DNA of 64,000 nt from Chlorokybus atmophyticus (GCA_009103225.1 RHPI01003369.1:1640017-1704016); one strand, 5' to 3'. Counted from the stretch's first letter, positions 4,386-62,472 are shown. Notes: generated from the letters alone by a model not told the origin. A program made the numbers and translations.

Positions 4386-4697
4386 TCTGGGTCAACATCC
4401 TTGAAGCTACCAGTACTCACATGCCCGTAGGTGCCCCTACAAATGCCGGCTCAAAAGCTATGCTGATAACGACGGCATTCCGGTAACGAAGAGGCTGCCG
4501 CTGTCCGTGAAGCAAGTTGCGTCACGCAAGTTGCATGCATACGTACAGTTGTACGGCCCACGATACCGTGCATGCGGCGTGCAAGCAACTCCGTGTCGCG
4601 ACGTCAGCTTGCCAGCTGGCACCCACTTAGGGTGTTAAGCGGGCTGCTGTACGCGACCAGGACGGCGGTATTGCCGGGGACGTCACTGGCAGGCGCC

Positions 4698-7496
4698 ATG
4701 GCTACGGGGGGCAGCATGAGCGTGGACATGGAGCTGGCTGCAGCTGGTTTGAGCGGGCTGCTGGGCGGGCAGAAGACGCTGGGCGGGACAGCCTTGCTGG
4801 CTGCCGCCTCCGCCGCCCTGCTGCTTGTCTCCGCCGCCCTGCTGCTGATCCTGCGACGTGGCAGGACGAAGGGCGCCGCACCGGGCAAGAGGAAGGTCGT
4901 TGCAGGCCAGCTGAGTCATAGCGCTCAGGAGCAGGCTGATGAGCAGGAGGACGCAGCTGGCCGTCGACGCGTGCTGGTTCTGTTTGGCACCCAGACGGGC
5001 ACCGCTGAGGGTTTCGCTCGCGTTGTCGCCGACGAAGCGCGCTCTCGGTAAGAGTTTCTGTCCAACGCACGCATTTCTTCAACTATGAGTCTTGCCTCGG
5101 CAGCAGTAGGGGTAACTGCACGATCAGTTGCAAAGATGTAATCGTTGCAACCGATGACAGTGACTGCTCGTTAATCATGCTCAGGCAACAGGCAGCTTGG
5201 CTGCAGTTGTATAGAAAAACGAGTGGATAGTGTGGAACTTGACATCAGCTTCAAAGACAAAGCCGTTTTGCATACAAGCAAGCTTGTTGCTCGCACTAGC
5301 GTGCAAAGAGTTTGCATTTGTAGCATTCCCACCCCAACCCCGAACTGACTGGTAGCACGTATACCGCCCAATTGCTGTTGATCTACTCGCATGCAAGCAC
5401 ATCCGTGCATACAAGTAACATCAGCGCTGTTGTCTGTGAATGAATAGGTACGGTGCACGAGCACGTGTTATGATAGAAGATGTAGAGCACTATGGAGGGG
5501 AGGGCATGAAGTCAATTGTATCCGAGCCAATTGTGATCCTGTTGATGGCCACATATGGCGACGGCGAGCCAACTGACAGTGCGGCAGTCTTCTGCAAGTG
5601 GTTAGAGGGCCAGGCAGCTGCTGCGGATCCGGATTGCGCGCTTCTCGCGCCAACAAGCTTTGCCGTTTTTGGCCTTGGCAACCGGCAGTATGAACAGTTT
5701 AACGCAGTAAGTAGTATTGCCAGCTTCATCATGAGTTAACTGCTGTGAATAGGGTGGTTATGTGTGATGGGTTGGGACAGCTTGTCTTCTGCGCAGGTTG
5801 GCAAGGTGGTAGATGCATCATGTTACAAGCTGGGTGGGAAGCGCGTTCTTGCGCTTGGGCTGGGTGATGATGACGACTGCATAGAGAATGACTTTTCTGC
5901 CTGGTAAGCAAAGTGTGCTGGTTAGCAGATGCTGATGCGTGTGACGGTGTCATTACATGTGGTTGTATTGATCGCGTTAACCTTTGTTAGGCGGGAGAAG
6001 TTGTGGCCAGCTTTGGACCCTTTGTTTGATGAGGAGGATGGGAATGGTCTGCGGAAGTCCTTCTCTGCAGGGCCCGCTGTGCAGACGGCACCCGCCGAGT
6101 ACAAATCCATAGTACATGGGGCAAATCATCCCACAGCGCCTTGCAGATTTTCAACTGAATCCAAGCCGGCAGCCCCTGACCTGCACCACCCTGTATTGGT
6201 ACCTGTTGCGGTGCGCAAGGAGTTGCACACACCTGCTTCGGAGCGATCCTGCGTGCACGCAGAGTTTGACATCCGTGACAGCGGGCTGAAGTACGAGCAT
6301 GGAGACCACATCGGTGTCTTTGCCGAGAATGCCCCAGCCTTAGTTGAAGAGGCAGCCAGGCTTCTTGGCTTGGACCTGGACTTAGTTTTCTCAGTTGTGC
6401 CTCGCGAGGACCAAACAGAGGGCTTTTCTCCCCCATTTCCGTGTCCGTGTACAGTCCGCACCGCGCTCGCACAATATTGCGAGCTCCTCACTCCCCCGCG
6501 CAAGGCGGGGTTGCTGGCCATGGCGGCGCACGCAAAGGACCCTGCAGATGAAAGCCGTCTTCGGTTCCTGGCTTCCAATGAAGGCAAAGATGAGTACTCA
6601 AGATGGGTCGTTGAGGACTTGCGCAGTGTGTTAGAGGTGAGGAGCAGCATACGTACATAATGTGTGCGTTTGCAACAGTCACTGATCCATGGTGCTACAG
6701 GCTCACAAGAGGATTGACTGACTCTGAACATCTGGTTGTGCAGGTTTTGGCTGCCTTTCCATCTGTGCGCTTGCCCTTAGGCGTGTTTTTGGCGTCTGTC
6801 GTGTCGCCACTTCAGCCGCGGTACTACTCAATATCTTCATCATCGCGCATGCATCCCGATAATATCCACGTGACGGCAGCCGTTGTGCGTGGTCCCACAC
6901 CCAGCGGGAGGTTGCATGAGGGCGTGTGCTCGTCGTGGCTGTCACGCGCGGAGCCCGGGACCCATATTGCCCCTGTTTTTGTTCGTTCAACTGCGTTCAA
7001 ACTGCCAAGCGACTCATCAGCACCCATTGTGATGGTGGGTCCTGGCACTGGCTTGGCACCGTTCAGAGGTTTCCTTCAAGAGCGCGCTGCACGCAAAGCA
7101 CAAGGTGTGTCCTTGGGTGAGGCGCATTTGTTCTTCGGGTGCCGGGACAAGTTGAAAGACTACATCTATCAAGAGGAGCTGCAGAAGTATGCGCAAGATG
7201 GTGCTGTGACACACTTGCACGTAGCATTCTCGCGAGAAAAGGGGCGAGAAAAGGAGTATGTGCAGCATCAAATGATGGCGAAAGCTGCAGAATTGTGGCC
7301 TCTTCTATCTCCAAAGGAGCGGGGCGGGTTGGGTGGTCACCTGTATGTGTGCGGTGATGCCAAGGCTATGGCAAAGGATGTGCACAGAGCGCTTCACTCC
7401 ATGGTGCAACAGCAAGAGTGCTGTTCAGGCAATGATGCAGAGCTGATTATCAAGCAGATGCAGCAGGAGGGGCGATACCAGAGAGATGTTTGGTAG
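4698..7496 (+). CDS. CPR: NADPH-cytochrome P450 reductase (5 exons: 4698-5047, 5448-5706, 5797-5903, 5991-6636, 6744-7496)
   Basis: N-terminal membrane anchor; FMN motifs LFGTQTGTAEGFA, ATYGDGEPTDSA, VFGLGNRQYEQFN, GLGDDD; FAD/NADPH motifs LQPRYYSISSS, MVGPGTGLAPFRGF, YVCGDAKAMAKDV; C-terminal RYQRDVW. Splice phases are consistent. Confidence 0.98.
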
Positions 7497-31796: not shown

Positions 31797-34367
31797 CTCA
31801 CCGATTGTTGTTTTGCGCAAGTCCACCTAGGAGAGACGCAATGTACTCCACAGCGCACAGTATACAGTACTAATGCAAGCCTTGGTATACAGTGTACAGT
31901 GTCAAGTCGTCGCAAATGCAGCAATGCCTCCGCTGCTTAATGTAGCTGTCAGCAACAACTGCGGTGATGTATGTGTGAGCTCGTCACGTCCCAAGCCACT
32001 TTCTCAAGCCGCTGCCCCGCTGCACCAACCAGCAAACTCCCCTTCGCAATTGGAATTGCACAAACAACGTATGTATGACAAGTGTGTGGAAAAGGTATGT
32101 GTCTAGCAGAGCAGCTGGCTAGCAACAAAACAAAAAGCAAATCAGCAGCCAATGCCAACCAGCGAAACAAAAAGAATGGGCTTTATTACAGCCGACAAAC
32201 CGCGCTCCCGACTTTTATTAAACAGTGATTCTGGTGGCTCGCAAAGGGTTTCCGGAAACTCCGGCCAATTATCGCCGCGCCCAGCACGTGATGTCCTCTT
32301 ACCACAAGTGGATTCGTTGATGCCAGCCTTACGTGCGCTAGCGTACCGTCACTCCGTACTACTTCAACAACACTTACGGACGGTTTGGCTGGTGTTGGGT
32401 GTGTCGTGTTGACCGAAGACCTAGAGCTCTTTACCCGTTGGCAAGTAGTGTGCCGGACAGGTCACTTGTTGCGCGATGGATTGCAGATGAGGCTTTTGAG
32501 GTTTGTTATGCTACAAGGCAGCGGTGTTGCCGGTTCGTAGCTGTAGTAACCGGCTGTCAACCGGTTACAGATGGTGAGGTAAGGCTTAGGCGTGACACGT
32601 GGAGTGCAACAGGGCTATCTACGGTATGCATGCAAGATATCATAATATTGGCGCGTACCAGTGCGACAGATGGCGCGAAGTAAATGGTGTATACTGCGAC
32701 GGTATGTGTGTCGCCAGTCGTCGCTCCTAGTCCCCCTGCTGTCTCAACCGGTACGCTGCAGGCCGCAGAGCGCAAAAGCGGCGGCGGTCAAATCAGGCTG
32801 TTCTGACCGCCCATGGCCAGCGGTGCTCACCCCCTGCCCTGAAAACAATGTGAGTTTGTCGGTTTGGCCGCGGCGGGCCGCCGGCGACACAGCATAGGCG
32901 CACCTGTTTTGCGGCTCTGAGCAACTGCACCACAGATCATGTCTAGGCACATAGGCCTACATGACTAGACACGATAGCCCACACAACGCCCGCGGTAGAC
33001 ATGTGGAGTCTAGAGGCATACAGTTAGTAGGCATAGTAGAATTTTGTGAAGTCTCTGGTCTATGCAGTAGGTTGCCTGGTGTAGGTGTATGCTACACCAC
33101 GTGTACGCTACACCGTGTAGCGCAGGCGAAGTAGGCAACCTTTGCATGAACTGGAGTTCATCCACAAAGGCAGGCCATTCAGGTCAAGACACATGACTCA
33201 TTTACCGGTAGGTACCTATACATAAATATATATAAGTATATATATATATGTACATATATACAATTGCGTAAGCAAGGCATGTAGCCCATATTTCCTATCT
33301 CAAGCATCACAAGCCATTAAGTTGTCAATCGGGTCGCATATACGATACATCACACCGTGTATGTGCGACTGCTATAAATAGCTTGTAATTGCATATTATA
33401 AATACGTAAGTACTGTGCTTGCATCATGTGTGTCGCGGTGATGACACTCGACATGCGCTTCTTGATCGCACTCCCTGTGCGCTCTCACCTGCATCCGGAT
33501 TACTTAGACTGGCTCAGTGTTGGCTAACAGCATAACAAGACCCATCGACGCAGTTGCTGGCATGGACCAATTGCAAGCAAGGCTTATGGCGGCGGCCGAC
33601 ATCGACAGCTTTGTTAGGCAAACCCTCACGAGACGGTCGGTAGTAAGCTGCAAGTGAGCGGACTGGCGTGGAAGCAGCGTCACACTTGAGACCTCCAAAT
33701 TCCCCATCAGCATCAGGCAAACGGCGTGCATGCACACTGCCTTGAGTTAGACTTGAGCTACCTTCAGCTGTTCCCAAACCCTTGTGCTGTAAGCCCTGTA
33801 TTTTTGTCTTTTGCCCTGCTTTGGTGTGCAATTCTTTCTTGCAATTGCTGGTGTTCAATTCGTGGCGTGGCCACCGCCCCGTTGCATGCAGACTGTATCA
33901 CAACCTTTTCACTATACGGTATCATTATATGGCCCTCCGAGGTGAGTCACCGCTGTGCTTTTAGCTGCTCAGCATTGCATTGCCTTAAATTGGATTAAGT
34001 GCGTGCAGTACGTGACCACGCTTCACTTACATAACCACCCTTAATACGGACTTCATGGTCATGGCAAATGTGTACTTGTTCACTTGCATCCTTGCATGGG
34101 AACTTGTTGAGTGATTGCTACCTCATACCAAGCTTAAGGGACTGCACTGTTTGTTTTTCCTCACCATTGTCTCTTGCACCTGCCATTCTCATCATCACAA
34201 GCACCGCGGTTCTCCTCTCTAACTCTTTACTCCACACTCCGCATGTTACCCTGCAGCAATGTTCACGCACACACTTTGCAACACGCATCTCCACTGCAAG
34301 ACACATTCTGCACCTGAGCCTTCCTTGCACAACATGTAACTGTTATCTGTCAAACACACACCCCGCA

Positions 34368-34879
34368 TGTAAAGGAATTCATTCGGTTACCACAAATCGA
34401 CCATAAAATCACCAAGTTTTTTGTGGTCGAGTGGCCTGTGACATTGGTCATCGGAGCTTGAGACCCGGGTTCGATTCCTGCCTTACACACGAATTTCGTG
34501 GTCGTTGTTTCTCGATCCAGTATCATCGTAAATGGTCACTTCATAAGTGCCATCATCGATGGGTTGCGACTTGCCTAATGGCAGTCGTGCCGGCGTTCAG
34601 TCGGCGCGGCAGGGCGCGACCTGCCTGTCGCGGTGCGACCTGGGGCCGGCAGCGGTACGCTATGCGCGCGGTATGAGCCTAAAATTGGCCGGTCCTTGGG
34701 AAGTGGGGCCGGTGACCGACCCTAATCAGTCCCTTGGGATAATTCCCAAGCTGATGGGAGCCAGCTGCTGAGGACGTCAGCGTTCTTAAGTGGGGGGGAA
34801 TGTAACGGCAAGGTACATTAAATTACTATAGATTGACCATAAAAGCACCAAGTCTTTTGTGGTCGAGTGGGCTGTGACA
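34368..34879 (+). mobile_element. Terminal-repeat retrotransposon in miniature (TRIM), 512 bp
   Basis: 5' LTR 34368-34443 (TGTAA...TGTGACA) and 3' LTR 34801-34879 share GACCATAAAA(T/G)CACCAAGT(T/C)TTTTGTGGTCGAGTGG(C/G)CTGTGACA. PBS-like TGGTCATCGGAGC at 34445-34457; PPT AAGTGGGGGGGAA at 34788-34800; flanks CCGCA/CCTCA (4 of 5 TSD match); no retrotransposon coding domain. Confidence 0.8.
34424..34478 (+). promoter_or_regulatory. tRNA-type (type 2) Pol III A box and B box spanning the LTR-PBS junction
   Basis: A box TGGTCGAGTGG (34424-34434), B box GGTTCGATTCC (34468-34478), 44 bp start to start as in tRNA genes. D-stem GTCG/TGAC and T-stem (C)CGGG/CCTG can pair. Confidence 0.65.
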
Positions 34880-34997
34880 CCTCACCCCCCACCTCTCACC
34901 CCTCTCCCCCTTTATACAACAGACTTCTTTATAGCATGAGTCTCAAAGGCCTTGTTATGCCGCGTTCATGCATGTGCGATATCACAATTGCTATATA

Positions 34998-35100
34998 AGG
35001 TGCTACATGCACCATGACAATACGGATCCTCACTTAGTCCTCCTTACTTACCACATAAGTAAGGAACTAAGAGTGACTTAAGCCAGTCCTTTAGACGTGA
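34998..35100 (-). repeat. Hairpin-containing ~100-bp repeat, copy 1 (inverted relative to the copies at 50978 and 52215)
   Basis: Its reverse complement matches 52215-52315 (about 9 differences over a 79-bp core, counted by eye). Contains the 10-bp stem TCCTTACTTA-ccaca-TAAGTAAGGA (35041-35065). Confidence 0.85.
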
Positions 35101-35723: not shown

Positions 35724-36416
35724 GGACCATGAATGGTCCGTACCTCTGGACCGGGATTTTCCCCTGCTAAGTGAAATTGGTGGACCATATATGGTCGGAC
35801 TGTCAATGACAGTCAGACCATGCATGGTCCAAACCTCACGTGAACGGTCCCATATTTTTTTGGGGTCGCACCATGTATGGTGACCTGTTTGTATGAGTTT
35901 GCAAGGACCATGTATGGTGCAATGCCCCCTGGCGCAGAAGACCAGGCATGGTTTGTTACTTCCACATGTCTGGTGATCGACAGTCGCACCATGCACGGTC
36001 CATGAATACGGACCGGAAGTCTTTGTTTTAACTGACATATTTCAGACCATGCATGGTGCGCTGCCCTCCTGGCTCAGTGGACCATTTATGGTGCCAGTCT
36101 GATCGACATTCGCACCATGCACGGTCCATGGATACGGACTTTGTTGTGCATATGTGGTCCACAAGCGGTACCATGCATGGTCCTAACAGACAACGCACCA
36201 TACATGGTCTGATTGACAGTCGCACCATGCATGGTCTATCATAATGTCACATCCATTGAAGCCATGCATGGTCCACAAGCGGCACCATGTCTGGTCCTAA
36301 CAGACAACGCACCACATGGTCTGATTGACAGTCGCACCATGCATGGTCTGTCATGATGTCACAGCCATTGAATCCATGCATGGTCTTAGCATTGGTGCCT
36401 GCACCGTGCCCGGTGC
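35724..36416. repeat. Array of about 18 palindromic (g)ACCATGCATGGT(c) units with variable spacers
   Basis: Copies at about 35724, 35783, 35816, 35869, 35907, 35941, 35988, 36046, 36081, 36114, 36170, 36197, 36224, 36261, 36284, 36311, 36336, 36373, 36401. Includes a ~113-bp tandem duplication (about 36156-36268 and 36269-36380). Confidence 0.92.
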
Positions 36417-40483: not shown

Positions 40484-43400
40484 GAGCCGGAAGGAAGCGA
40501 GGAGGCAGACTCGGAGGAAACTGCAGATGTCTCAACAAGTCCATCATTGCGTAAATCCTCCGCACAGCAACGCGGCAAAGGACCTGCGGTGGATCTCAAA
40601 GAAGAGTTCCGTGCAGCTCTTCAAAAGATGCAGAGGTTTGAAGTGAAACGCTACAGTTCCACGGGCACCACACAGCCACCCAACCTGTCGGACGACATCT
40701 TGAGGGTAAGCACATGTCTTGAATTACCCCCCCCNNNNNNNNNNNNNNNNNNNNNNNNNNNNNNNNNNNNNNNNNNNNNNNNNNNNNNNNNNNNNNNNNN
40801 NNNNNNNNNNNNNNNNNNNNNNNNNNNNNNNNNNNNNNNNNNNNNNNNNNNNNNNNNNNNNNNNNNNNNNNNNNNNNNNNNNNNNNNNNNNNNNNNNNNN
40901 NNNNNNNNNNNNNNNNNNNNNNNNNNNNNNNNNNNNNNNNNNNNNNNNNNNNNNNNNNNNNNNNNNNNNNNNNNNNNNNNNNNNNNNNNNNNNNNNNNNN
41001 NNNNNNNNNNNNNNNNNNNNNNNNNNNNNNNNNNNNNNNNNNNNNNNNNNNNNNNNNNNNNNNNNNNNNNNNNNNNNNNNNNNNNNNNNNNNNNNNNNNN
41101 NNNNNNNNNNNNNNNNNNNNNNNNNNNNNNNNNNNNNNNNNNNNNNNNNNNNNNNNNNNNNNNNNNNNNNNNNNNNNNNNNNNNNNNNNNNNNNNNNNNN
41201 NNNNNNNNNNNNNNNNNNNNNNNNNNNNNNNNNNNNNNNNNNNNNNNNNNNNNNNNNNNNNNNNNNNNNNNNNNNNNNNNNNNNNNNNNNNNNNNNNNNN
41301 NNNNNNNNNNNNNNNNNNNNNNNNNNNNNNNNNNNNNNNNNNNNNNNNNNNNNNNNNNNNNNNNNNNNNNNNNNNNNNNNNNNNNNNNNNNNNNNNNNNN
41401 NNNNNNNNNNNNNNNNNNNNNNNNNNNNNNNNNNNNNNNNNNNNNNNNNNNNNNNNNNNNNNNNNNNNNNNNNNNNNNNNNNNNNNNNNNNNNNNNNNNN
41501 NNNNNNNNNNNNNNNNNNNNNNNNNNNNNNNNNNNNNNNNNNNNNNNNNNNNNNNNNNNNNNNNNNNNNNNNNNNNNNNNNNNNNNNNNNNNNNNNNNNN
41601 NNNNNNNNNNNNNNNNNNNNNNNNNNNNNNNNNNNNNNNNNNNNNNNNNNNNNNNNNNNNNNNNNNNNNNNNNNNNNNNNNNNNNTTATCGATGGCCACC
41701 CCCGCACTGGCAATGTGGCAGCTTACATCAATTCCGTACACGGGCAACAACGTGAGCCCAACGCCATGCTCTGGTCGGACTTCGATGACGCTGGCAAGCC
41801 AGCTGTCACTGTGTATGCGATCAAGGACATACAGGCAGGAGAGGAGCTACTACTGGACTATGACCCTTTCCGTGGGCCACCTGATGGGCAGACAGACAAA
41901 GTAAGTGGTTGCATTGTTGCATGCATGCTTGCTTGTTAGGCAGCTGTCAATGCCAGACTGTCAATGCAGACTGTCAATCTGTTACAGGACACTAACTGGC
42001 CTTTTGGTTGCAGACCCAACTGTGGAGAATGGAAGATGTTGCGCAGAAGTTTGTATATGGCTGGGGGCTGGCCATGGAGGACGCTATGTGGCTGGTAACG
42101 AGCAAGGCGCCAAGGGAGCCGGGCGAGAGTGCCAGGGCGTATTCCAGGCGGTTGCTCACCCGTGCTGTCAAGCTGAAGCGCACCAGATCAATGGTAAGTT
42201 ATGTATTTTTGCAAAGGCAATGCATGTACATTGACAGTCCCTTTTTATAGTCTGTTGTTGGCATGCAAATCGCCGTGCAGTTCGTGAACTGCACCACGGA
42301 TTGCATGCCAACAACCAATAGAGTATGCACGTCTGTCAACAGATAGACCCTGAAGCTCATGTTCAGCGCCAAATATCTGTTCACTTCTGTAAAGCTGTGC
42401 ATGACGCTGCCTATGAAATGAAAGAGGCAGCAAACAGACAAGTAGACGACCTCAAAGAAGTCATTAGAGACTTAGAGCTACGGATTACACAAGAGAATGT
42501 GCTCAGGGTACGTTGCCATGTAGGCCACCAAACATTCCACACAGAGCCCTAACTTGTTACCTTTGTTTGCAGGAGAAAATGGCCGCCATGTACACCAAGA
42601 CAGTCGAGGCGCACCAAGCTCAGACACTTGGCCTGGCTGCCAGAGAGAAAGCTCTTACCCGGCAGGCTGTATCGCTTGACTGCAGCAGGAGGAAAGGGAA
42701 AAGCATTGGGAGAAGAAGATAACAGCTGTTCTTCAAAAAGGCTGCAAGAAGCTCCTCTCCGAGGTGATGCAAGACGCGCTGCGTGTCATTGTCAACGAGC
42801 AGATCGAGCACGAGGAGAAGAAGGAGGAGCAGGACAAGGAGGCTGATGCAGCACGTGCATTGGAAGCCATGACGGAGCCTTCCACTGCGGCTCAGGCGGT
42901 GCCTGCTAGGCCTGAACCTGTGAACCCCATGAGTGATATAGAGATTGATTCGCATCCCCTGTGGACTTGGCTCGAGCGCGCCAACATGCGTCCACCCACC
43001 ACTGGTCCAAGGCCCATGCGGTCTGACAGGCCAAAGGACAGTCCCCCTCACAGTCCCACTCACAACCCCCATGGCCCACCGTCCCCTCCCCCTCACAATC
43101 CCCATGGCCCACCGGCACCTCCCCCTGGTACTAGTATGCCAGCTGGCACCAGTACGCAAGCCCCAGACCCTCCACGTGTTGACAGTCCCAAGCTACCGAT
43201 AACAGCAGGTCCCCCTCCCCTGACTCCACCACCGTCCAAACCGTCCAAAAAGCAGCGCTAGGACCTGCCAGCAGCCACAGAAGGAACTCCACAATCAACC
43301 ACGCCATCAACTAGTCAGTCCACCCCTACCGGAACCTTGCAGCTATCAACCTTGCAGCTATCAGGCTCTTCGTTCAGAGAACGTCTGCGAAAAGTTGTCG

Positions 43401-44532
43401 CAGGTCCGACACCATCAGCGAATACGCCAACACCAAGTACGCCACAGGGCCGGCCGCCTCTACCTCTGCATAATGTCACCCGGGACCTGACTCCCGGCGC
43501 TGAGCCCGAGGCGCTTGTGAAGATACGAGAAGCCGATAGCGTGCACGCCGCCGACCTCGACGCTGCATTGCAAGCCGTGCAAAACCTTGCATCTGCAGCA
43601 AAGGTACAGTTTATACACACATGGGCTGTCAACAAGGCTTGCAGCATACTGTTTGCGCCCGCATGGGCACAAACTGTTGACGACGACCATTGAGGACTGT
43701 GAACAGTATGTGCCCATGCGGGCGCAAACTGTTGACAGTCCTCAATGGTCGTCGACGACTGTCACAGAGTTTGATGCATGTTGACAATGCTCTGCTAGCT
43801 AGTGTGTGGACTCACTTCTTGTTTCGTCCAACGAGCGGGCACAGACCAGTCACACGGTCTTGCAAGAGTCCATGCGCAACTTCAATGAGATGCGCAAAAA
43901 GCAACTTGAACGTGCTCTCAACAATCTGGAGGAGTCGCACCGGCAGCGTAGGCTGCTGGCTGATAACTTCACCCGTGAAGACAAACTGCTGCGGCAGCAG
44001 CTGCATGAGCTGCAGCAAAGGGAGTTCGCAGCAAAATCCCTTGCTGAGGAGCTGCAGCAAAGGGAGTTGGCGGCGGTATACAATGCTGAGGAGCTGCGGC
44101 GGCAAAGGGAGTTGGCAGCAAAATCCAATGCTGAGGAGGTTGACAGTCTGCACCGGCAGTTGCTTCAGGCACAGCAGGAGGTTGCAGCATCAAACGCATC
44201 GATGACCAACATGGCGGCAGACGCAGAGAACCGTTGGCGCTCCACCGATGCGGTGCTTCACGAGTACCATCAGCGCAACGCCAGTGTTGGAACGGGTGCA
44301 GCAGCTGGAGTCCACCTCAAGTGCGGCGGCCAATGTTGGTGAAGAGCTGCACCGTACAAGGGAACAGCTACTCAAGCTGCAGCAGCAAGCGGTACAACCT
44401 GTTCCTGAGGCTGTCAACGCTGAGACTGTCAACGCACTGACAGAGAGAGCTGAGCGAGCAGAGAAGCAGTTGGAAGAGGTGCGAGCCCGCAATCGAGAGC
44501 TGGAGCAACAGTCGGGGCACGCGCAGTGTTGA
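39640..44532 (+). pseudogene. Long decayed multi-exon gene: Cys/His-rich N-terminus, acidic/polyQ, SET domain, helical region, Pro-rich region, coiled coil; truncated by the copia LTR
   Basis: After the gap: IDGHPRTGNVAAYINSVHGQQREPNAM...VTVYAIKDIQAGEELLLDY (SET C-terminal motifs GN.a.yINh..PN and I.aGEEL..dY). In-frame TAG at 39936 and 43259, frameshifts near 42680 and 44270. The frame otherwise continues through several GT-AG introns; the terminal TGA is supplied by the LTR (TGT TGA). Confidence 0.7.
40735..41685. other. Assembly gap (951 N)
   Basis: Run of N; hides the N-terminal part of the SET domain. Confidence 1.
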
Positions 44533-44966
44533 AGGACTAGCATGTACATGTAGCTGAGGCAAGCATGGATACACACGGACAGAGCTACCGCCACCAGAGC
44601 ATACACAAGTCACATCACATTCATCTATTACAAGTTGTCCGCTGGTTCTTATACCAGCCAGTTACACACACGTCTACGTTTGCAAGCACTGCGTAAGTTA
44701 TACTCAGCCCTTTGACGCGCTCTAAGCTGCGTTGTCTTCCTTACAACTAGAGCTTTCCAACGAGCTCTTACACGCCTCATATGAGTAAGTATACGCGGAG
44801 ATACGAAGCAGTTAGTAAGGCTCCTGTCTGGAGTCCGGAGTCTGGTCCGACGATGCCATCTTGCTAAGTCCGGACCTAATGCTCGTCCTTACGACCTTCT
44901 ACTCCTGTGTGGAGGGTCGATGCTGATCGTATGTAGGAATGACTCTCAACACTCCCACGCGAGCAG

Positions 44967-45689
44967 CTAGAGCCCAGGGTCTGCAGAGGATGCGGTGAAG
45001 CCAAGTGCCTCCAGCTCCTTGGTGAGCTTGATGTGCCACATACGCGGCGCCTGTCGCAGCCCGTACAGTGCCTTGATCAGCTTGCACGCTGTGCCTCTCT
45101 CCCCTTCTTCATATCCAGGTGGTTGCTCGATGAAGATCTCCTCCTCCAGCTCTCCGTAGAGGAAGGCAGTCTTTACATCCAGGTAATGTAGCTCTAGGTC
45201 TTCAGCAGCAACCATAGCTAGCAGTGCACGGAAGGTGGTATGCTTACTTGCAGGTGCAAACACTTCGTTGAAGTCCACACCTTCCTGCTGCAAGAAGCCC
45301 TTTGCCACCAGTCTTGCCTTGTAGCGCTCAATGTTGCCCTGACCATCACGCTTCACCTTGAAGACCCATTTCACTGGAATGGTCTTCACTCCTTGCGGTA
45401 ACTGCTCCAGTGACCAAGTGTTGTTGGCATGGAGTGACGCAATCTCCTCGTCCATAGCACGCTGCCATTGCTCCGCATCTGGTGCTAACAATGCCTCCTC
45501 GTAGGTGCTTGGCTCCTCATTCTGCACACTGGCGACGTGTGCCTTGTGTAAGAAGTCAGGTGCCTTTCTCTCCCTCACTGGGTATCTCCGAGCTGCGTGC
45601 TCCTGCTGTTGGTACGGCCCCTCTTGGCCTGCTACAGCTGAGTCCTGCTCACCCTTGTTGTTGATGATGGCCTTGCCTGTAGCCTCCAC
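44967..45689 (-). pseudogene. Copia reverse transcriptase, N-terminal half only
   Basis: EEPSTYEEAL...WQRAMDEEIASL...WVFKVK...YKARLVAKGF...DVKTAFLYG...LIKALYGLRQAPRMW; the YVDD motif and RNase H are absent before the PPT. Confidence 0.93.
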
Positions 45690-47845
45690 TGTTTCAAGAA
45701 GCCTGCTTCTGTTTGTGATAATCCCTCGTGGAAAACCACCTCTCTGCTCACGATGATCTTCTGAGTGTCCTCGAGCAAGATCCTGTAAGCCTTGGAACCC
45801 GGTTCATAGCCAACGAAGATGCCCTTCTTGCTGACCGGCTCCAGCTTGTGCCTGAGCTGTTTAGGCACTAGTGCATATGCCGTGCATCCAAACACACGCA
45901 TACCACTCACATCTGGTGTGGCTCCATAGAAGTGCTCCCACGGAGTCTTCTGCTCTGAGCTCACCGGAGACCTGTTGCGGATGTAGTTGGCAGTGAGTAC
46001 CGCCTCCTTCCACAAACTGTCTTCCATCTTTGTGTCGTTGAGCATGGCTCGAACACGCTCCAAGAGTGTCCTGTTGAGGCGTTCAGCTGCTCCATTCTGC
46101 TGCGGGGTGTAGGGTGCCGTTGTCTCGTGGCGTATGCCCTTGCTGGCGAAGAACTCCTTCAACTCCTTGTTGATGTACTCCCCTCCTCGGTCACTCCTCA
46201 TTGCCTTTAACTTGTTGCCAGACTGCGTCTCGAACAAGGCCACAACTGTGCGCACGGCTCCAGCAACTTCTGACTTGAGCGTCAATGGAGAGATGATTGA
46301 CAGCTTGCTGTAGTCGTCAAGGAATGTAGCAAAGTACCTGGCCCCTCCCTTCGCCACAATGCGCATAGGGCCACAGACATCCATGTGCACAAGCTCGCAA
46401 GGATGCTGACTGCTAGAAGAGGATGATGGGAATGGCATAGCATGCTGCTTTGCAACCAGGCATGGTTCACAAAGTGCACCTGATGCATTCTTGAGTTCTT
46501 CTGTGCTGAGATGGATGCCCTTGACCATCTTTTCAGCGACAAGGCGAGTGAGGTTGACGTAGCTGAAATGCCCGAACCTTCGATGCCACAATGTTGGCGA
46601 CTCCTTGTCCTTCACCACCACGGCTTGACTGTCAATGTCCTTAGGGTGCTGCTCCACGTGGTAGAGCCCTCCCGGATAAGTGATTCCAACCATGTCCACG
46701 ACCCCATCAAGGTTAAATGTGCAGCCACCCTTCCGAAATAGGATCTCCGCGCCTAAGCGCTCCGCAACCCTCACAGAGAATAGACTCGCAACAGCCTTAG
46801 GAACATGCAGGACGTTGCGTAACAACACCTCGCGTAGTGTGTTACCAACCTTGCACTGGAGTCGTACGTTGCCAACTCCCTCAGCCACCAGTACTTCGCC
46901 ACCGAAGCCCGCCACCTTGATTGTGGACGTCAGCTTCCTGTAGCCCTCCATCACCTCCTTGTTTGGTGTGAGATGACGATCGCAGCCAGAGTCCACCACC
47001 CAGAAAGCTGTGCCCGCCCTCGAACTGGATGCAGTGAAGGCGACATGTTTCTCCTTGTGTTGGTGCTCGTTGCCGCTGTTGCTGGTGCTTGCTCTAGGTT
47101 GCCCCTGTTGTTTCTTCCTACAGTCCTTCACAATGTGCCCCTTCCAACCACACCAGTGGCATGTGAGGTCTTTGTGACGAGGATTGCCTGGCTTGTTGCC
47201 CTTGTACTTCTCTTCATGGTTGCTCTTCTTTGCGTGCTTGCCGGTGTAGAAGGCGACGGCATCCGCTTGCTCGTCCTTCTTCACAACCTTCTGCTCCACG
47301 GTGAGCAGCTTCGGTAGCACATCGTCCACCGTCAACTCCGATGATGACGTCTCCAGCAGGGTTGCGACGACCTCGTACTCTGCTGGTAGCCCTGCAACAA
47401 TGGCCAGCACTACCTCCGTCTCCCCCATGTTGTGGCCGACGTTGATGAGGTCCGCCCACAGCTCTCTCGCGCGCGCAATATACTTTGTGATGGGTTCTGC
47501 TGTCTCCTGCCCGAGTGCGCTGAGCTGCTTGCGTAGATGCAACTTTCTGGCATTGTTCTTGGCTCTGAAAACGGCTGATAGCTTTTCCCAAGCTTGTCTA
47601 CCATCTTCACATGCAGTGAGCATGGGAAAGTGATGCGGTTTGCTGTTCAACACAAGCAAAGAGTGTGCTTCTGCTGAATGCTCTGACCACACAGTGTTCG
47701 CTCCTGGTGTTGGTGGTGGTGCCTTCGGATCAACGTACTTCCACACCTTCTTGTGGATGAGCAAGGCCTTCATCTCCACGCACCATGTGTTGTAGTTGTC
47801 GGTGTCCAGCTTTGCAATCTGCCCCTTGTCGTAGGTCGCCTCCAT
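45632..47845 (-). CDS. Copia gag-protease-integrase ORF
   Basis: Uninterrupted ORF from MEATYDKG through the integrase. The RT part (44967-45689) is in a different frame. Confidence 0.92.
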   Translation of the reverse strand: MEATYDKGQIAKLDTDNYNTWCVEMKALLIHKKVWKYVDPKAPPPTPGANTVWSEHSAEAHSLLVLNSKPHHFPMLTACEDGRQAWEKLSAVFRAKNNARKLHLRKQLSALGQETAEPITKYIARARELWADLINVGHNMGETEVVLAIVAGLPAEYEVVATLLETSSSELTVDDVLPKLLTVEQKVVKKDEQADAVAFYTGKHAKKSNHEEKYKGNKPGNPRHKDLTCHWCGWKGHIVKDCRKKQQGQPRASTSNSGNEHQHKEKHVAFTASSSRAGTAFWVVDSGCDRHLTPNKEVMEGYRKLTSTIKVAGFGGEVLVAEGVGNVRLQCKVGNTLREVLLRNVLHVPKAVASLFSVRVAERLGAEILFRKGGCTFNLDGVVDMVGITYPGGLYHVEQHPKDIDSQAVVVKDKESPTLWHRRFGHFSYVNLTRLVAEKMVKGIHLSTEELKNASGALCEPCLVAKQHAMPFPSSSSSSQHPCELVHMDVCGPMRIVAKGGARYFATFLDDYSKLSIISPLTLKSEVAGAVRTVVALFETQSGNKLKAMRSDRGGEYINKELKEFFASKGIRHETTAPYTPQQNGAAERLNRTLLERVRAMLNDTKMEDSLWKEAVLTANYIRNRSPVSSEQKTPWEHFYGATPDVSGMRVFGCTAYALVPKQLRHKLEPVSKKGIFVGYEPGSKAYRILLEDTQKIIVSREVVFHEGLSQTEAGFLKQWRLQARPSSTTRVSRTQL

Positions 47846-48643
47846 CTTGTCGCTCCTGCCTTCCTTGCAGTTGACACCCAAGGCTCTGCTACTAACAAGC
47901 TACCGTAGTGTAGAACTACTAATGCACACAAGCTAGTCTCACACTCTTCAAGCGTAGTGTGGGCCCATAACCTGTTGAAGGACTAGCATGCACATGTAGC
48001 TGAGGCAAGCATAGACAGACAGAGCTACCGCCACCAAAGCATACACAAGTCACATCACATTCATCTATTACAAGTTGTCCGCTGGTTCTTATACCAGCCA
48101 TTCACACACACGTCTACGTTTGCAAGCACTGCGTAAGCTATACTCAGCCCTTTGACGCGCTCTAAGCTGCGTTGTCTTCCTTACAACCAAAGCTTTTCAA
48201 CAAGCTCTTACACGCCTCATATGAGTAAGTATACGCGGAGATACCAAGCAGTTAGTAAGGCTCTAGTCTGGAGTCCGGAGTCTGGTCCGACGATGCCATC
48301 TTGATAAGTCCGGACTCAGTGCTCGTCCTTACGACCTTCTACTCCTGTGTGGAGGGTCGATGCTGATCGTATGTAGGAATGACTCTCAACAGATCCTGGG
48401 GTACATCTAAACCTTCTTGGTGTACATAATCTTTGTATAGTACAAGCGTGTTAATGCTTAAGATGAACATCAGTGTTTTTATGCCTTCTTTCAGTAATGA
48501 CCACTCACAACAAGCACAAATGAGCACATGAGCACAATTAACAGCCGCATGGACTGTAAGTGACACGTATTGCCTTGTTGCAGGCTGTCAACCACTCACA
48601 ACATGAAACCACACATGAGCACAATTGACAGCCGCAACGACAG

Positions 48644-50977: not shown

Positions 50978-51107
50978 ACGCACCCATAGGGCTAGCCAAA
51001 GTCAGTCTCTGTCCCTTATTTATGTGAGAAGTACGGACCAAGTGAGGATTCCGCTCACACAAGCATGTGTAGTGCTTGTTGGGTGTGCTCATGCGGTCTA
51101 CTAGTAG
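50978..51107 (+). repeat. Hairpin repeat family, copy 2 (more diverged)
   Basis: GGGCTAGCCAAAGTCA...GGACCAAGTGAGGATTCCGC...ATGCGGTC...CTAGTAG aligns with 52215-52356 in direct orientation. Confidence 0.75.
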
Positions 51108-52214: not shown

Positions 52215-52356
52215 TCACGCCCAAAGGGCTGGCGAAAGTCACTCTTAGTTCCTTACTTATGTGGTAAGTAAGAGGGACCAAGTGAGGATTCCGCATGCCA
52301 TGGTGTGTAGCACTTGGTATGTGTGCTTATGCGGTCAGTCCTTGTCTACTTAGTAG
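52215..52356 (+). repeat. Hairpin repeat family, copy 3
   Basis: Inverted match to 34998-35100 and direct match to 50978-51107; stem CTTACTTA-tgtgg-TAAGTAAG. Confidence 0.85.
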
Positions 52357-52564: not shown

Positions 52565-52923
52565 TGTGATGGGACAAGGCCTATGTGGACACAGTCAGCA
52601 TGTGCTGGCAGGTCAGCACACAGTGACAACGCCTTGGACCTTGGCAATGCTGTGTGCCAGGTCGGGAGAGCGGCAAGTGGTATAAAAGCTCGGTTGCTAC
52701 CTTGAGTAGAGATCGGAGTGTGTCCACCACTCAAGGGCCACTTGTGTGTGGGATTTGCTGGAGGGCTGGCGGTCATCCTCTCCTACCCGACTCAGATGCT
52801 GTGTCTTCCCTCCACGAGGTGCTGCACCAGGGTGTGTTGTGCATAAGTCCTTTGTGCTTGTGCTCAAGTTGGTGAGGCTCACTAGCGGGTAAGTGAGTGG
52901 TATCGTTACATTGGACTCGGAGC
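52565..52923 (+). mobile_element. Putative 5' LTR and PBS of the gag-bearing element
   Basis: TGTGAT... to ...TCGTTACA (52910) with internal TATAAAAG at 52681, followed by T-TGGACTCGGAGC-TTG, which resembles the TRIM junction ACA-T-TGGTCATCGGAGC-TTG. No partner LTR was found. Confidence 0.35.
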
Positions 52924-53092
52924 TTGGTTCCAAGCCTTGCATGCTTGCCTATCAGCTTGTGCACTTGCTGGACGGCGCATGTGTTGCATGGCGGTGTTCT
53001 CATGCTGATTATGCATGTAGTTGGTCACTCCAGCTGCAAGCACACTTGCATGCACGGTGTGGGCCATGTTATACGCTGATTTGTGCATTATT

Positions 53093-53228
53093 TGAGTGCG
53101 TGTTGCTGCATTTTGCTGCGTCTTGCTGCATACACGTCTGCACTTGCGCGTGTGAGTGCGTGTAGCTGCATTTTGCTGCGTCTTGCTGCATACACGTCTG
53201 CACTTGCGCGTGTGACTGCGTGTTGCTG
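53093..53228 (+). repeat. 60-bp tandem repeat (about 2.3 copies) in the gag leader
   Basis: TGAGTGCGTGTTGCTGCATTTTGCTGCGTCTTGCTGCATACACGTCTGCACTTGCGCGTG repeated with about 2 substitutions. Confidence 0.93.
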
Positions 53229-53274
53229 AATCCACGCTCATTACGTGCTTGTGCACGAGCAAAAACCATCGATA

Positions 53275-54272
53275 ATGGCTGACGGAGCTGCCAACGTTGC
53301 CTTGTCGCTGTCGCGGCTCAAGTTACGGAGCTGCAAAGCCAGGTCCAGGCCATGATGGCGGCCAACACGTCCATAAAGGAGCAGCACGACCAGCAGCTAG
53401 CCAAGTTGGTTGCTGCAAACGCCCATAAGATGATGCCTAGCCTCGAATTTTTCTCCGGCACCCATGACGGGAAAGGCAAGGATCTTGGCGTGGCCGTGCA
53501 TAATTGGCTATTCGGCTGTAAGCGTGTGTTGCATGCCGCAGAGGTGTTGCCTATGCATGAGGCCAAAGCGGTGTCGCTTTTGGCATCCTACTTGCGCGGC
53601 AGTGCTGCCCGCATGTGGGAGGGGGCTTCTCCACGTTTAGAGGCCGCTGACAAAGTTGTCACGAGCTTGGATGTGTTCGAGAGTGCTATGTTGCAGGCCT
53701 ACGGGGGTGTGAACCCGTCGCAGAAGGCGCGTGACAAGCTACGTCGCTTGAAAGTCAAGCCCAACCAGTCCATCGAGGACTTTACTGTCTACTTCGAGTC
53801 CGTGTGTGCCGAAGTTGGCCCCGACAAGCCTCTGTCTAAGGCAAAGAAAATGGACAAGTATTGGGCCGCCTTGCCGGAGGATACGGCAAAGCAATCAACC
53901 TTCAAGGAGAGACTTGAGTCCTTCACGCATGCCAACTGCGACTTGATGAAGCGCACGGCCGTTCAGAATGACAACAGCCAGCGCATGATCGACCAGGCCA
54001 AGAAGTTGACGATTGTCAACAATAACCAGCCCTCCTCGTCCACTCCCTCGGTGGGAGGTGGCAGTGGCAACAGCCGCAAGCGCGGCCGCCCTGACGGTAG
54101 AGGCTAGCAGCCCGCCCAGCTGATCAACAAGAAGCGTGCACTCAGCATCCCGGGTGTCACCGCGGAGCGCAAGGGCGCTCGCTTCAAGGCCGGCTTGTAC
54201 CTCAGGTGTGGGGAGAAAGGCCACCGTGTGGCGAACTGCCCCAAACCCTCCTCCGACAAGCCTGTAGCATAG
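53275..54272 (+). pseudogene. Ty3/gypsy-like gag (capsid plus degenerate zinc knuckle), no pol
   Basis: FSGTHDGKG...VHNWL...AVSLLASYLRGSAARMW...FESAMLQAYG...ARDKLRRLKVKPNQSIEDFTVYFE (retrotransposon gag pattern). Frameshift near 53310, in-frame TAG at 54105, then YLRCGEKGHRVANC (CCHC with the first Cys changed to Tyr), stop at 54270-54272. Confidence 0.8.
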
Positions 54273-60242: not shown

Positions 60243-62390
60243 TCATATGGACTTTGGCAGCCCTGTTCTCCTATCAAGCAAAGCTGTTGCCTCATCTGCA
60301 GTAATGGATGGGCCTTCACCAACACGCGTGGATATCAAGTACCTAAGAGCGCCTAGATGCCTTTCACGTGGCTGCCACTTGTCTTGGACAGCCTCTGCTT
60401 GCTGTAACAATGCGTCGTCTCCAACATACCTGTTATTCACATGACTCCAAATTCAGCACACGCAACTTGACTGAAACTGCTGTACACAACTCACTTACTT
60501 GGACACAGTTGTGCCTTCCGAAGGAGGGAATGTTTCAAGCACCCGATGCAGCAGCTCCGGCATGTCCTGCTCTAACGCAAAGAGGACTGCGTTGGGCCCG
60601 GCATCAAACGTGTATATGGCCTGTCAAGACACAAACATCAGTCACACTATCGCTCGTGGGATAAGTGGTTATGCTGCTCTAGCTGAGCCAGTGAGTAAGT
60701 GCACACAGATGTGGGCACTAGCAACAACATGCACAGCTCACCGTAATTCGGTGCTTGTCTTTGTTCAATTGTTCCACTAGCTCAATCACCCTGCGGACCA
60801 GGTGCTTCGGTCATTGCCGAGAATGAAAGCGAGAAACATCGGTGCACATGCTTTCAAGCGCATGTGTGTGCGTATGGCTGCGCGCATACAGGCACACGTG
60901 GGTGCCCCAGCACGGAGGGGGGGGGGGGGGGGNTGCGTGTACGTGAAAGCACGCAAACGTGAGCGTATGTCTGTGTGTGTCAGCGCGCACGTGCACAAAC
61001 GGTCACGCTTGCGTGCGAGAACACCCACATGCGTCAATGCGCACGTTGACGCATTTGTGCATTGATGCAGGGTGTCTGGGTGCATGCATGTACGTGTAGA
61101 GAGAAAGCAAGCACCTGAGCGCATGCGTGCAGGTGGGTACACATGTGTGTGGGTGTACAAGTATGGGCGCATGCGGGTGCGTGCGTGCGTATGTGCATGC
61201 TTTGAGTGAAGTGTCAGCGGACAACGCACTGACTGTCTGGAGGTGTCGTTGAGGTAGAAGATGGGAGGGGCGGTGTCTAGACAAGTTGCATGAAACTGGT
61301 TGCTGTCTGCCGCTGTTAACGACCCAAAGCTGGTAAAGTCACGGTTCTGAATGGCCTGCTCCATTGCTGCCATGCGCTCCGGCACAATGTGCTGCCCAAG
61401 AACAACGAACAACATATTCAAACTCGTCACTGACATGCTGTATGCACTATTCTACAACTGTGTGTTGCCATGTCATGCATGGACACATACATAGACCTTG
61501 CAATGCTGCCATGCATGCATTCGGGCGTGTGTGTAAGCAAGCCAGATGTACCCATGCACCTCGCACATGGACAAGCATGTATGCTTTTGCAAGTACCCAT
61601 AACAACAACATGCTAAAAGTTTGGCGCGAAGCAGCACACATACCTTTGCACGGTGTGCGAGCAACGGGCTGGTCTGCACGGATCTGCGCATGCCATCTGA
61701 GCTGCTGGTGTCTTTGCGGCGGTCGCTGACGACGCAGATGAGGACTCGAAGGTCAGGCCAGTGGTGCTCATCGGCCACCTGCACAGCAATGCTGTCGCCG
61801 CCGTCGGCGGCAACGCCCACATCCCAGCGGACAAAACCCCCATACAGGCTGCGGCACGCACTGCCTGAACCCATGCGTGCAATGGCTGAGAGGGGGAGGC
61901 GGTGGTTTTGGTCGTTGCTGTCGTTGTTGTGGTCGCCAGCAACACCCAGGAGCTGCGCCACGCAGTAAACCAGGCCTGCCAGGCCGGCCGCAGAAGATGC
62001 CAGGCCGGCGGCAGTGGGGAAGCTGTTGGAGGAGGCCACGTGAAACTTGAGGTCAGGGCGGCCGGCTCGGGCCCGCAGGGCGTCCAGGCAGGCTCTGTGG
62101 CGGGGGTGGGCGGCCATGTCCAGCTCGCCCGACCCAGCCAGCCATATGCGGTCGCTGGAGAAGGAGGCGGAGGCGGTGGCGGACGTTGTGGCGGCCAGGC
62201 GGCCTGGGTCCAGCGTCACCGACAGCGACGAGTTCAGCGGCAGCACCAGCTTCTCATCCCGCTTGCCCCAGTACTTGATCACGGCAATGTTCGTCGGACA
62301 CCTCACCGTAACCACCTGCAGCTCCTCCTCACCCAGACCAGCGCCGCCATCCACCTCCACGACCGCCGCCGCCACCACCTCCGAGGCCAT
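60243..62390 (-). CDS. MVD: Diphosphomevalonate decarboxylase (5 exons: 62390-61644, 61391-61234, 60790-60742, about 60621-60500, about 60430-60243)
   Basis: [29 protein letters not shown]; [16 protein letters not shown]; [19 protein letters not shown]; [16 protein letters not shown]; [21 protein letters not shown]; [11 protein letters not shown]. Confidence 0.97.
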
Positions 62391-62472
62391 GTTGGCGGGA
62401 AAGTCACAAGCACTGTTGGGGTCCTCTTCTGGGGTTTTGCAGTCGGGTCCCAAACACCTAACTAAAGAGACC

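Follow-up and report, generated by a model that had tools for sequence, protein, structure and literature searches.

A 512-bp feature within the 64-kb window (i.e., the whole stretch of DNA that was analysed here) raises the question of whether a miniature LTR retrotransposon may be transcribed from a promoter that is borrowed from a tRNA gene. A first-pass annotation of this locus had claimed that the junction between the 5' long terminal repeat (LTR) and the primer-binding site (PBS) builds a tRNA-like Pol III promoter, and had suggested that the element might be a tRNA analogue of Cassandra. The nature of the feature itself can be stated plainly. Its internal part of 357 bp is enclosed by direct repeats of 76 nt and 79 nt which are identical in 64 of 79 alignment columns, both of them starting with TGT and ending with ACA. 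All internal ORFs are short, and the longest of them, encoding 81 aa, has no relative among 5.8 billion proteins. The features by which TRIMs are recognized are hence found throughout, i.e., short terminal repeats with TG..CA ends, a non-coding internal domain, a total length below 1 kb, and a PBS beside the 5' LTR together with a polypurine tract (PPT) beside the 3' LTR, whereby the PBS was judged by published TRIM PBSs. Because short LTRs with TG..CA ends, PBS and PPT coincide with the lack of coding capacity, the feature is soundly identified as a TRIM, that is, a non-autonomous miniature LTR retrotransposon, which is present here as an old and decayed copy. The LTRs, the PPT and the near-duplication of the target site that the first-pass annotation had listed were all recovered, and their coordinates are compiled in Table 1 along with those of the other features of the window.

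Table 1. Features of the 512-bp element and of its surroundings within the 64-kb window.
Feature	Position	Strand	Basis or remark
Candidate 5-bp target site duplication (TSD), 5' flank CCGCA	34363-34367	+	4/5 versus CCTCA at 34880-34884
5' LTR, 76 nt, TGT...ACA	34368-34443	+	Direct repeat with 34801-34879; 3' 44 columns 41/44, 5' 35 columns 23/35
T6 run immediately 5' of the A box (TCTTTT in the 3' LTR)	34417-34422	+	Repeat alignment
A-box consensus TGGTCGAGTGG, U5 end of the 5' LTR	34424-34434	+	Regular expression TRGYNNANN(N)GG
Putative PBS TGGTCATCGGAGCTTG, initiator-Met tRNA 3'-end type with one extra C	34445-34460	+	Unique in the window; comparison with published PBSs
T-arm-like hairpin CCGGG-TTCGATT-CCTGC holding B box GGTTCGATTCC (34468-34478)	34465-34481	+	Consensus search
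Non-coding internal domain with GC-rich, strongly structured core (~34560-34720)	34482-34787	+	ORFs without homologue
PPT AAGTGGGGGGGAA, adjoining the 3' LTR	34788-34800	+	Same style as in Helenus-1_SMo
3' LTR, 79 nt; T4 at 34855-34858, A-box copy at 34860-34870, downstream B box absent	34801-34879	+	Repeat alignment, box search
Candidate TSD, 3' flank CCTCA	34880-34884	+	Comparison with the 5' flank
Repeat of ~100-120 bp, three copies, 76-86% identical	35000-35100, 50983-51098, 52215-52336	-, +, +	
Tandem array of ~112-bp units, about 72-92% identical, rich in CCATGCATGG palindromes	35780-36385		
Assembly gap of 951 N	40735-41685		
Copia-type element, ~350-bp LTRs 96% identical, shortened internal region	44527-48314	-	ORFs given in the text
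Related element fragment: LTR end ...TAAGTGAGTGGTATCGTTACA (to 52910), 18-nt PBS TGGACTCGGAGCTTGGTT (52912-52929), leader, gag-like ORF 53352-54107, decayed CCHC knuckle	52890-54265	+	Junction alignment, ORFs
Host genes, among them NADPH-cytochrome P450 reductase (exons) and mevalonate diphosphate decarboxylase	4572-7496, 61473-62453	+, -	

The age of the copy is reflected by a Kimura two-parameter (K2P) distance of 0.18 between the two LTRs. Their divergence is distributed unevenly, as 12 of 35 columns (34%) differ within the 5' part, versus 3 of 44 (7%) within the 3' part (Fisher p = 0.003), and the mismatches mostly involve C or G in the 5' LTR and T or A in the 3' LTR; methylation-driven decay, inter-element recombination and gene conversion are candidate causes of this pattern. 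The flanking pentanucleotides match in four out of five positions, with both sides being C-rich, hence the match provides weak support for a TSD, and it fits insertion into a single C-rich tract. When the RNA of the whole element was folded, it was found to be more structured than its shuffled counterparts (z = -3.4).

The PBS deserves a closer description as it connects the element with known TRIMs. A PBS-like 13-mer (TGGTCATCGGAGC, 34445-34457) starts one base past the 5' LTR end and occurs a single time in the 64-kb window; read as TGGT(C)ATCGGAGCTTG, it represents a PBS beginning one base beyond the LTR that matches published TRIM PBSs. In particular, insertion of one C into tggtatcggagc, the 12-mer with which the internal part of Helenus-1_SMo, a TRIM of Selaginella, begins, yields the PBS of the mini-element (Kojima 2024, PMC10886601). 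The sole plant Helenus family is thereby nearly identical to the mini-element in its PBS and also in its PPT, the junction of PPT and LTR start (TTAAGTGGGGGGGAA followed by TGTAA) resembling the corresponding Helenus-1_SMo junction (ttaggggggag followed by tgtta). From the conserved Cassandra PBS TGGTATCAGAGC, which we take to be the plant initiator-Met tRNA PBS, the PBS of the mini-element differs by one substitution and by the same one-base insertion. The canonical 12-mer is thus exceeded by one base, which counts against the reading preferred below. The core CGGAGCTTG is common to this PBS and to a second junction at 52912-52929, and judging by the latter the complementarity of the PBS runs over 16-18 nt, i.e., CGGAGCTTGG(TT).

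Next to the PBS, the two boxes of a type-2 Pol III promoter were identified. The A box TGGTCGAGTGG occurs at 34424 and again at 34860, that is, within the last 20 nt of each LTR, and GTCG (34426-34429) is able to pair with TGAC (34439-34442) within the 5' LTR end, so that both the A box and the D-arm pairing formerly assigned to the LTR end are indeed present. The B-box consensus GGTTCGANNCC has one occurrence in the 64-kb window (34468), where 0.18 would be expected, and GGTTCGATTCC is a perfect match to box B. From the start of the A box to that of the B box the distance is 44 nt, and in tRNA the distance from T8 to G52 likewise is 44 nt; the earlier description of a perfect B box with a T-arm at tRNA spacing is hence borne out. 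Between the boxes, T34444 together with the PBS exactly fills the 17-nt slot (34444-34460) which the anticodon arm occupies in the tRNA register, in line with the position that had been proposed for the PBS. Pairs of A and B boxes spaced by 30-60 nt were found once in the actual window and in none of 1000 Markov-simulated windows. When the Helenus motifs were applied, box A (TRGCY...YGG) and box B (GGTTC) were both found, with TGGTC...TGG carrying a T for C at the fourth base, and an internal Pol III promoter of the small-RNA-gene type is accordingly present in the sense of a consensus match. A consensus search revealed no B box downstream of the 3' LTR; the complete type-2 promoter consensus is therefore confined to the 5' junction, a conclusion which is supported by the box search and which agrees with what had been claimed for this junction. 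As a side observation, TTTCGTGGTCG at 34492-34502, about 10 nt past the T-arm-like hairpin, is a partial echo of TTTTGTGGTCG, the motif located ahead of the A box in the LTR; this echo may be the vestige of a second tRNA-like unit or, alternatively, a decayed terminator followed by the start of a next unit.

The position of the boxes bears on two further explanations for the feature. The first assumes that no retroelement is involved, but rather a local duplication of ~76 nt or a tRNA-derived SINE which inserted secondarily into one copy, and it would readily account for the single copy in the window and for the imperfect TSD. However, TG..CA ends, a PPT before the 3' repeat and a PBS after the 5' repeat are unexpected from a random duplication, the A-box half resides in both repeats, so was replicated with the LTR, and the PBS lies inside the tRNA-like unit, an arrangement that a SINE insertion cannot produce. 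This explanation is considered highly improbable, and its secondary-insertion version, which the first-pass annotation had itself named as a finding that would overturn its proposal, is excluded by the presence of the A-box half in both LTRs. The second explanation takes the feature to be a canonical Helenus element whose true LTR extends further, so as to include the tRNA-like unit in full, and whose 3' LTR is truncated at 34879 in this copy. Such a view would be in accordance with all described Helenus families, in which both boxes locate inside the LTR (PMC10886601), but the repeat stops at ...ACA one base ahead of a 13-16-nt PBS match, the 3' repeat stops at the very same ACA, where the C-rich flank with its 4/5 TSD resumes, and no PBS follows the T-arm region. 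There is, as a consequence, very little probability left for a truncated Helenus LTR.

The likeness of the junction to a tRNA was subsequently assessed beyond the promoter boxes. ARAGORN reported no tRNA with default settings; with the threshold lowered to 80%, 46 calls were made across the window, a weak one at the junction among them, which was rejected as evidence, this number corresponding to noise level. Rfam yielded no tRNA match, including a search with a 111-nt slice of the junction, and aligned the T-arm piece alone to the tmRNA T arm with 5.1 bits. The minimum-free-energy fold of the junction slice is not a cloverleaf, its energy equals that of shuffled sequences (z ~0), and no acceptor stem can be drawn for the junction segment. 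The set of acceptor, D, anticodon and T arms by which a tRNA gene or pseudogene is defined is hence not found. Because ARAGORN, Rfam and the fold tests all came out without a tRNA, the likeness consists of promoter boxes in register and not of a tRNA mimic, and the idea of a tRNA-like structure put forward in the first-pass annotation is not supported. The boxes and their spacing were kept while acceptor and anticodon stems are absent, which is the same pattern as reported for Helenus LTRs and SINE heads, where the promoter alone is conserved (PMC10886601).

The tRNA-like pieces might also serve a purpose other than transcription, namely pairing with the primer tRNA, at its T and D arms, during priming or packaging. 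The PBS complementarity reaching into the T stem (CGGAGCTTG) at both junctions of the window would suit this function; moreover, the arms of a tRNA are self-complementary, hence sequences pairing with them resemble tRNA arms themselves, and the near-palindrome TTCGA enables GGTTCGATTCC to pair with any T arm. Analogues are given by the boxes next to the Ty1 PBS and by the contacts that the retroviral U5/leader region makes with its primer. The hairpin stem CCGGG/CCTGC, however, mismatches the T stem of the primer that is implied by the PBS extension, i.e., CTTG(G)/CCAAG, and the exact tRNA register of A and B boxes would be unneeded for pairing. Likewise, the tRNA-like parts of Helenus have no complementarity to their PBS (Kojima, PMC10886601). 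A role in priming or packaging instead of transcription is regarded as improbable. Read-through into the primer tRNA was considered as an origin of the boxes and rejected, as it predicts that the PBS is followed by tRNA sequence in antisense; the boxes, however, read in the sense direction, and the T-arm stem mismatches that of the primer.

With respect to termination, TTTT is absent from 34423 to 34854 and a T4 run is found in the 3' LTR, exactly as had been noted in the first-pass annotation, which concluded that a Pol III transcript would span almost exactly one element. The observation stands, but the argument on transcript length lacks statistical weight, given that TTTT is absent from 43% of all 432-nt segments of this 64-kb stretch, and the T6 run at 34417-34422 had been overlooked. 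Because so many segments of the same size are also free of TTTT, the T4-free body carries no weight, and it was discarded as Pol III evidence. In type-2 promoters, Pol III usually starts 10-20 nt upstream of box A. A transcript started in this way would hence contain the T6 run within its initial ~20 nt, and Pol III transcription would imply that the 5' copy of the run is read through while the 3' copy terminates, with an R region of ~9 nt (AAGU(U/C)UUUU), which is possible but awkward. The Pol III reading is plausible, but it is drawn from one decayed copy and burdened with this terminator problem.

The main rival explanation holds that the mini-element is an ordinary TRIM of the Pol II type, whose A and B boxes are either the non-functional relic of a tRNA-related capture near the PBS, or inherited U5 sequence combined with coincidence, and never drove transcription. 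It would be compatible with a single old copy which has T6 directly ahead of the A box and no tRNA fold, and with the TATA-like motif CATAAAA that was noticed upon reading of both LTRs. The motif GAGTGG...ACA followed by TTGG is, furthermore, common to a gag-bearing, presumably Pol II-transcribed element of the window, and the majority of TRIMs belong to this type (PMC10886601). On the other hand, a perfect 11-nt B box with its hairpin in exact tRNA register with an A box is very unlikely to have arisen by chance, boxes and spacing retained while all stems were lost would be the product of selection for a promoter, and U3, R and U5 equipped with Pol II signals would probably be hard to fit into an LTR of 76 nt. 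Overall, the Pol II explanation is a serious, albeit somewhat doubtful, possibility.

The gag-bearing element just mentioned is the fragment at 52890-54265. Its sequence at 52890-52936 reads TAAGTGAGTGGTATCGTTACA, T, TGGACTCGGAGCTTGGTT and CCAAGCC in succession, and is identical in 27 of 33 positions to the junction of the mini-element, i.e., GAGTGGCCTGTGACA, T and TGGTCATCGGAGCTTG; the pattern CA..TGG..CGGAGCTTG is common to both junctions. The leader contains a 60-bp tandem repeat (53093-53228) and the gag-like ORF encodes 251 aa, with the decayed CCHC knuckle located after an in-frame stop and followed by unrelated AT-rich sequence. The ORF has no Pfam match and is unrelated to the Copia-type proteins retrieved from the protein collection, and its label as gag is a tentative one based on position, knuckle remnant and reading of the sequence. 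Within the window, neither pol nor a 3' LTR was found for this fragment. It is read as the remaining 5' part of an LTR retrotransposon with coding capacity, whose primer is that of the mini-element and whose U5 end is related to it. As LTR end and PBS are common to both elements and a gag-like ORF follows in one of them, a protein-coding lineage with the same priming system exists in the genome, and the fragment may be related to the lineage of the autonomous partner. It thereby provides a lead to the autonomous gypsy partner with the same junction which the first-pass annotation had proposed to look for: a related junction and the gag-like ORF are in place, pol and a Pfam match are missing. 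The A-like and B-like motifs of the fragment itself each miss the consensus. GAGTGG, which precedes the LTR end by 10-11 nt, occurs in the gag-bearing element, too, and since it is found there without consensus boxes, this part of the A box may be inherited U5 sequence rather than being tRNA-derived.

The intact Copia-type element was rejected as a partner, as it has a different PBS (GGTTATGGGCCCAC) and different LTR ends. That PBS is complementary to the anticodon stem-loop of the initiator tRNA and not to its 3' end. The element encodes a gag-protease-integrase ORF (45632-47881) and a separate reverse transcriptase ORF (44967-45689), and no protein of the collection exceeds 49% identity to it. 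Among the other surroundings, a three-copy repeat with a MITE- or SINE-like look contains an internal hairpin of ~20 bp (CACTCTTAGTTCCTTACTTA...TAAGTAAGGAGGACTAAGTG); of its copies, one follows the mini-element at a distance of 120 bp and another precedes the gag-bearing fragment. The GC content of the window is 51%. The best named matches of the cytochrome P450 reductase exon are from land plants (56-59% identical), and the host genes suggest a green-lineage organism which keeps the mevalonate pathway, perhaps a streptophyte alga.

Searches for additional copies covered the 64-kb window, metagenomes, prokaryote genomes and the protein collection. Exact, 3-mismatch and word-7 BLASTN searches revealed no further copies in the window, and the 81-aa ORF of the element gave no candidates in the protein collection. 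Scanning metagenomes for the LTR end resulted in 0 matches, whereas the combination of PBS core and B box resulted in 80 matches, none of them with LTR-end/TGGT context, which are read as bacterial tmRNA- or tRNA-type sequences or as chance. The scan of prokaryote genomes likewise gave 0 matches.

Considering all of this, the mini-element is tentatively best explained as a TRIMp3-type element whose Pol III promoter is assembled at the junction of 5' LTR and PBS alone and which was mobilised in trans, by an element related to the gag-bearing one, an explanation to which we assign a probability not far short of even. The mechanism suggested for it assumes that the family, while still active, relied on a TFIIIC-type factor which would have recognized both boxes across the junction of 5' LTR and PBS, with Pol III starting inside the LTR at a distance of about 10-20 nt ahead of box A. 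The RNA thus formed would comprise ~440 nt and end at the T run of the 3' LTR. Reverse transcription and integration would then have come, in trans, from an element that is akin to the gag-bearing one and uses the same type of PBS. In this mechanism the split promoter would be no special design but the automatic outcome of a PBS residing between the boxes. Sequence located 5' of the PBS becomes U5 and is copied to both LTRs, while sequence located 3' of it stays internal, hence a full promoter is expected at the full-length 5' junction alone, and 3' LTRs as well as solo LTRs would be promoter-dead. Functionally, the mini-element would correspond to a Helenus-like TRIMp3 element of differing architecture, as far as this can be deduced from its sequence.

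Comparison with known systems places this explanation next to three groups of TRIMs with small-RNA-gene promoters. Helenus comprises TRIMs with tRNA-derived sequence in their LTRs that are known from fungi, six animal phyla and Selaginella, Ajax comprises 5S-derived ones of nemerteans, and both were grouped with Cassandra as TRIMp3 (Kojima 2024, PMC10886601). The tRNA analogue of Cassandra for which the first-pass annotation knew of no described family was hence already described. Cassandra and Ajax share with the mini-element the replacement of the Pol II promoter of a TRIM by that of a small RNA gene and a PBS of the initiator-tRNA type, and in ferns the Cassandra PBS TGGTATCAGAGC is separated by only 8 nt from the 5S part; they differ from it by having a type-1 promoter (5S: box A/IE/box C) that lies wholly within each LTR. 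In the mini-element, the box A and box C patterns of Cassandra are absent on either strand and there is no 5S match in Rfam, thus a Cassandra-type 5S element was dismissed. SINEs derived from tRNA (SINE2) likewise have a head in which the cloverleaf is decayed but both promoter boxes stay at the spacing of a tRNA, and they are short, non-coding and presumably transcribed by Pol III. Unlike the mini-element, SINE2 elements are devoid of LTRs, PBS and PPT and are mobilised by LINEs via their 3' tail, whereas the mini-element has all three and no A-rich tail. The retrozymes of plants (PMC10886601) are also small non-autonomous LTR elements which carry a functional-RNA motif in their LTRs in place of an ordinary promoter, but this motif is a hammerhead ribozyme; neither a hammerhead core nor an Rfam hammerhead match is found in the mini-element, hence this identity was discarded as well.

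The closest likeness is that to Helenus, which equally is a non-coding miniature LTR element with PBS, PPT, TG..CA ends and type-2 boxes without a functional tRNA, and whose sizes of 311-1263 bp (PMC10886601) include the 512 bp of the mini-element, as do those of Cassandra. The differences concern the architecture. Helenus has both boxes inside each LTR, in contrast to the A box alone in the LTR of the mini-element, where the PBS replaces the anticodon arm and the B box is internal. LTR lengths are 104-323 bp in Helenus families listed in Table S1 and in Helenus-1_SMo (PMC10886601) versus 76-79 nt here; in four Helenus LTR sequences the tRNA-like unit is followed by a T run that still belongs to the LTR, whereas the T run of the mini-element precedes the A box; and outside of the PBS and PPT motifs no sequence similarity to Helenus is detectable. 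No paper describing a Pol III promoter that is split by the LTR boundary was found in the later literature. The kind of element is hence already known, and the split architecture as well as the host lineage could be new. That the locus represents an undescribed TRIMp3 architecture of the green lineage, with the promoter being split by the LTR boundary (box A in U5, box B after the PBS), the PBS replacing the anticodon arm, and the promoter being rebuilt at full-length 5' junctions alone while 3' and solo LTRs are silent, is a rather unlikely proposition. Such an architecture might stem from a tRNA-derived Pol III transcript which gained PBS and PPT, i.e., from a SINE-like RNA turned to LTR-type replication. 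Should the boxes turn out not to be conserved, the locus would be just one more decayed TRIM copy. If, however, the split promoter proves to be genuine and conserved, LTR-type parasites would have a second, structurally different way of hijacking Pol III, TRIMp3 elements would be known from another green lineage, and the finding would bear on the old question that links tRNA-derived retroposons with LTR-type replication. In that case intact 5' junctions alone would fire, unlike in Cassandra and Helenus, where every LTR carries the full promoter.
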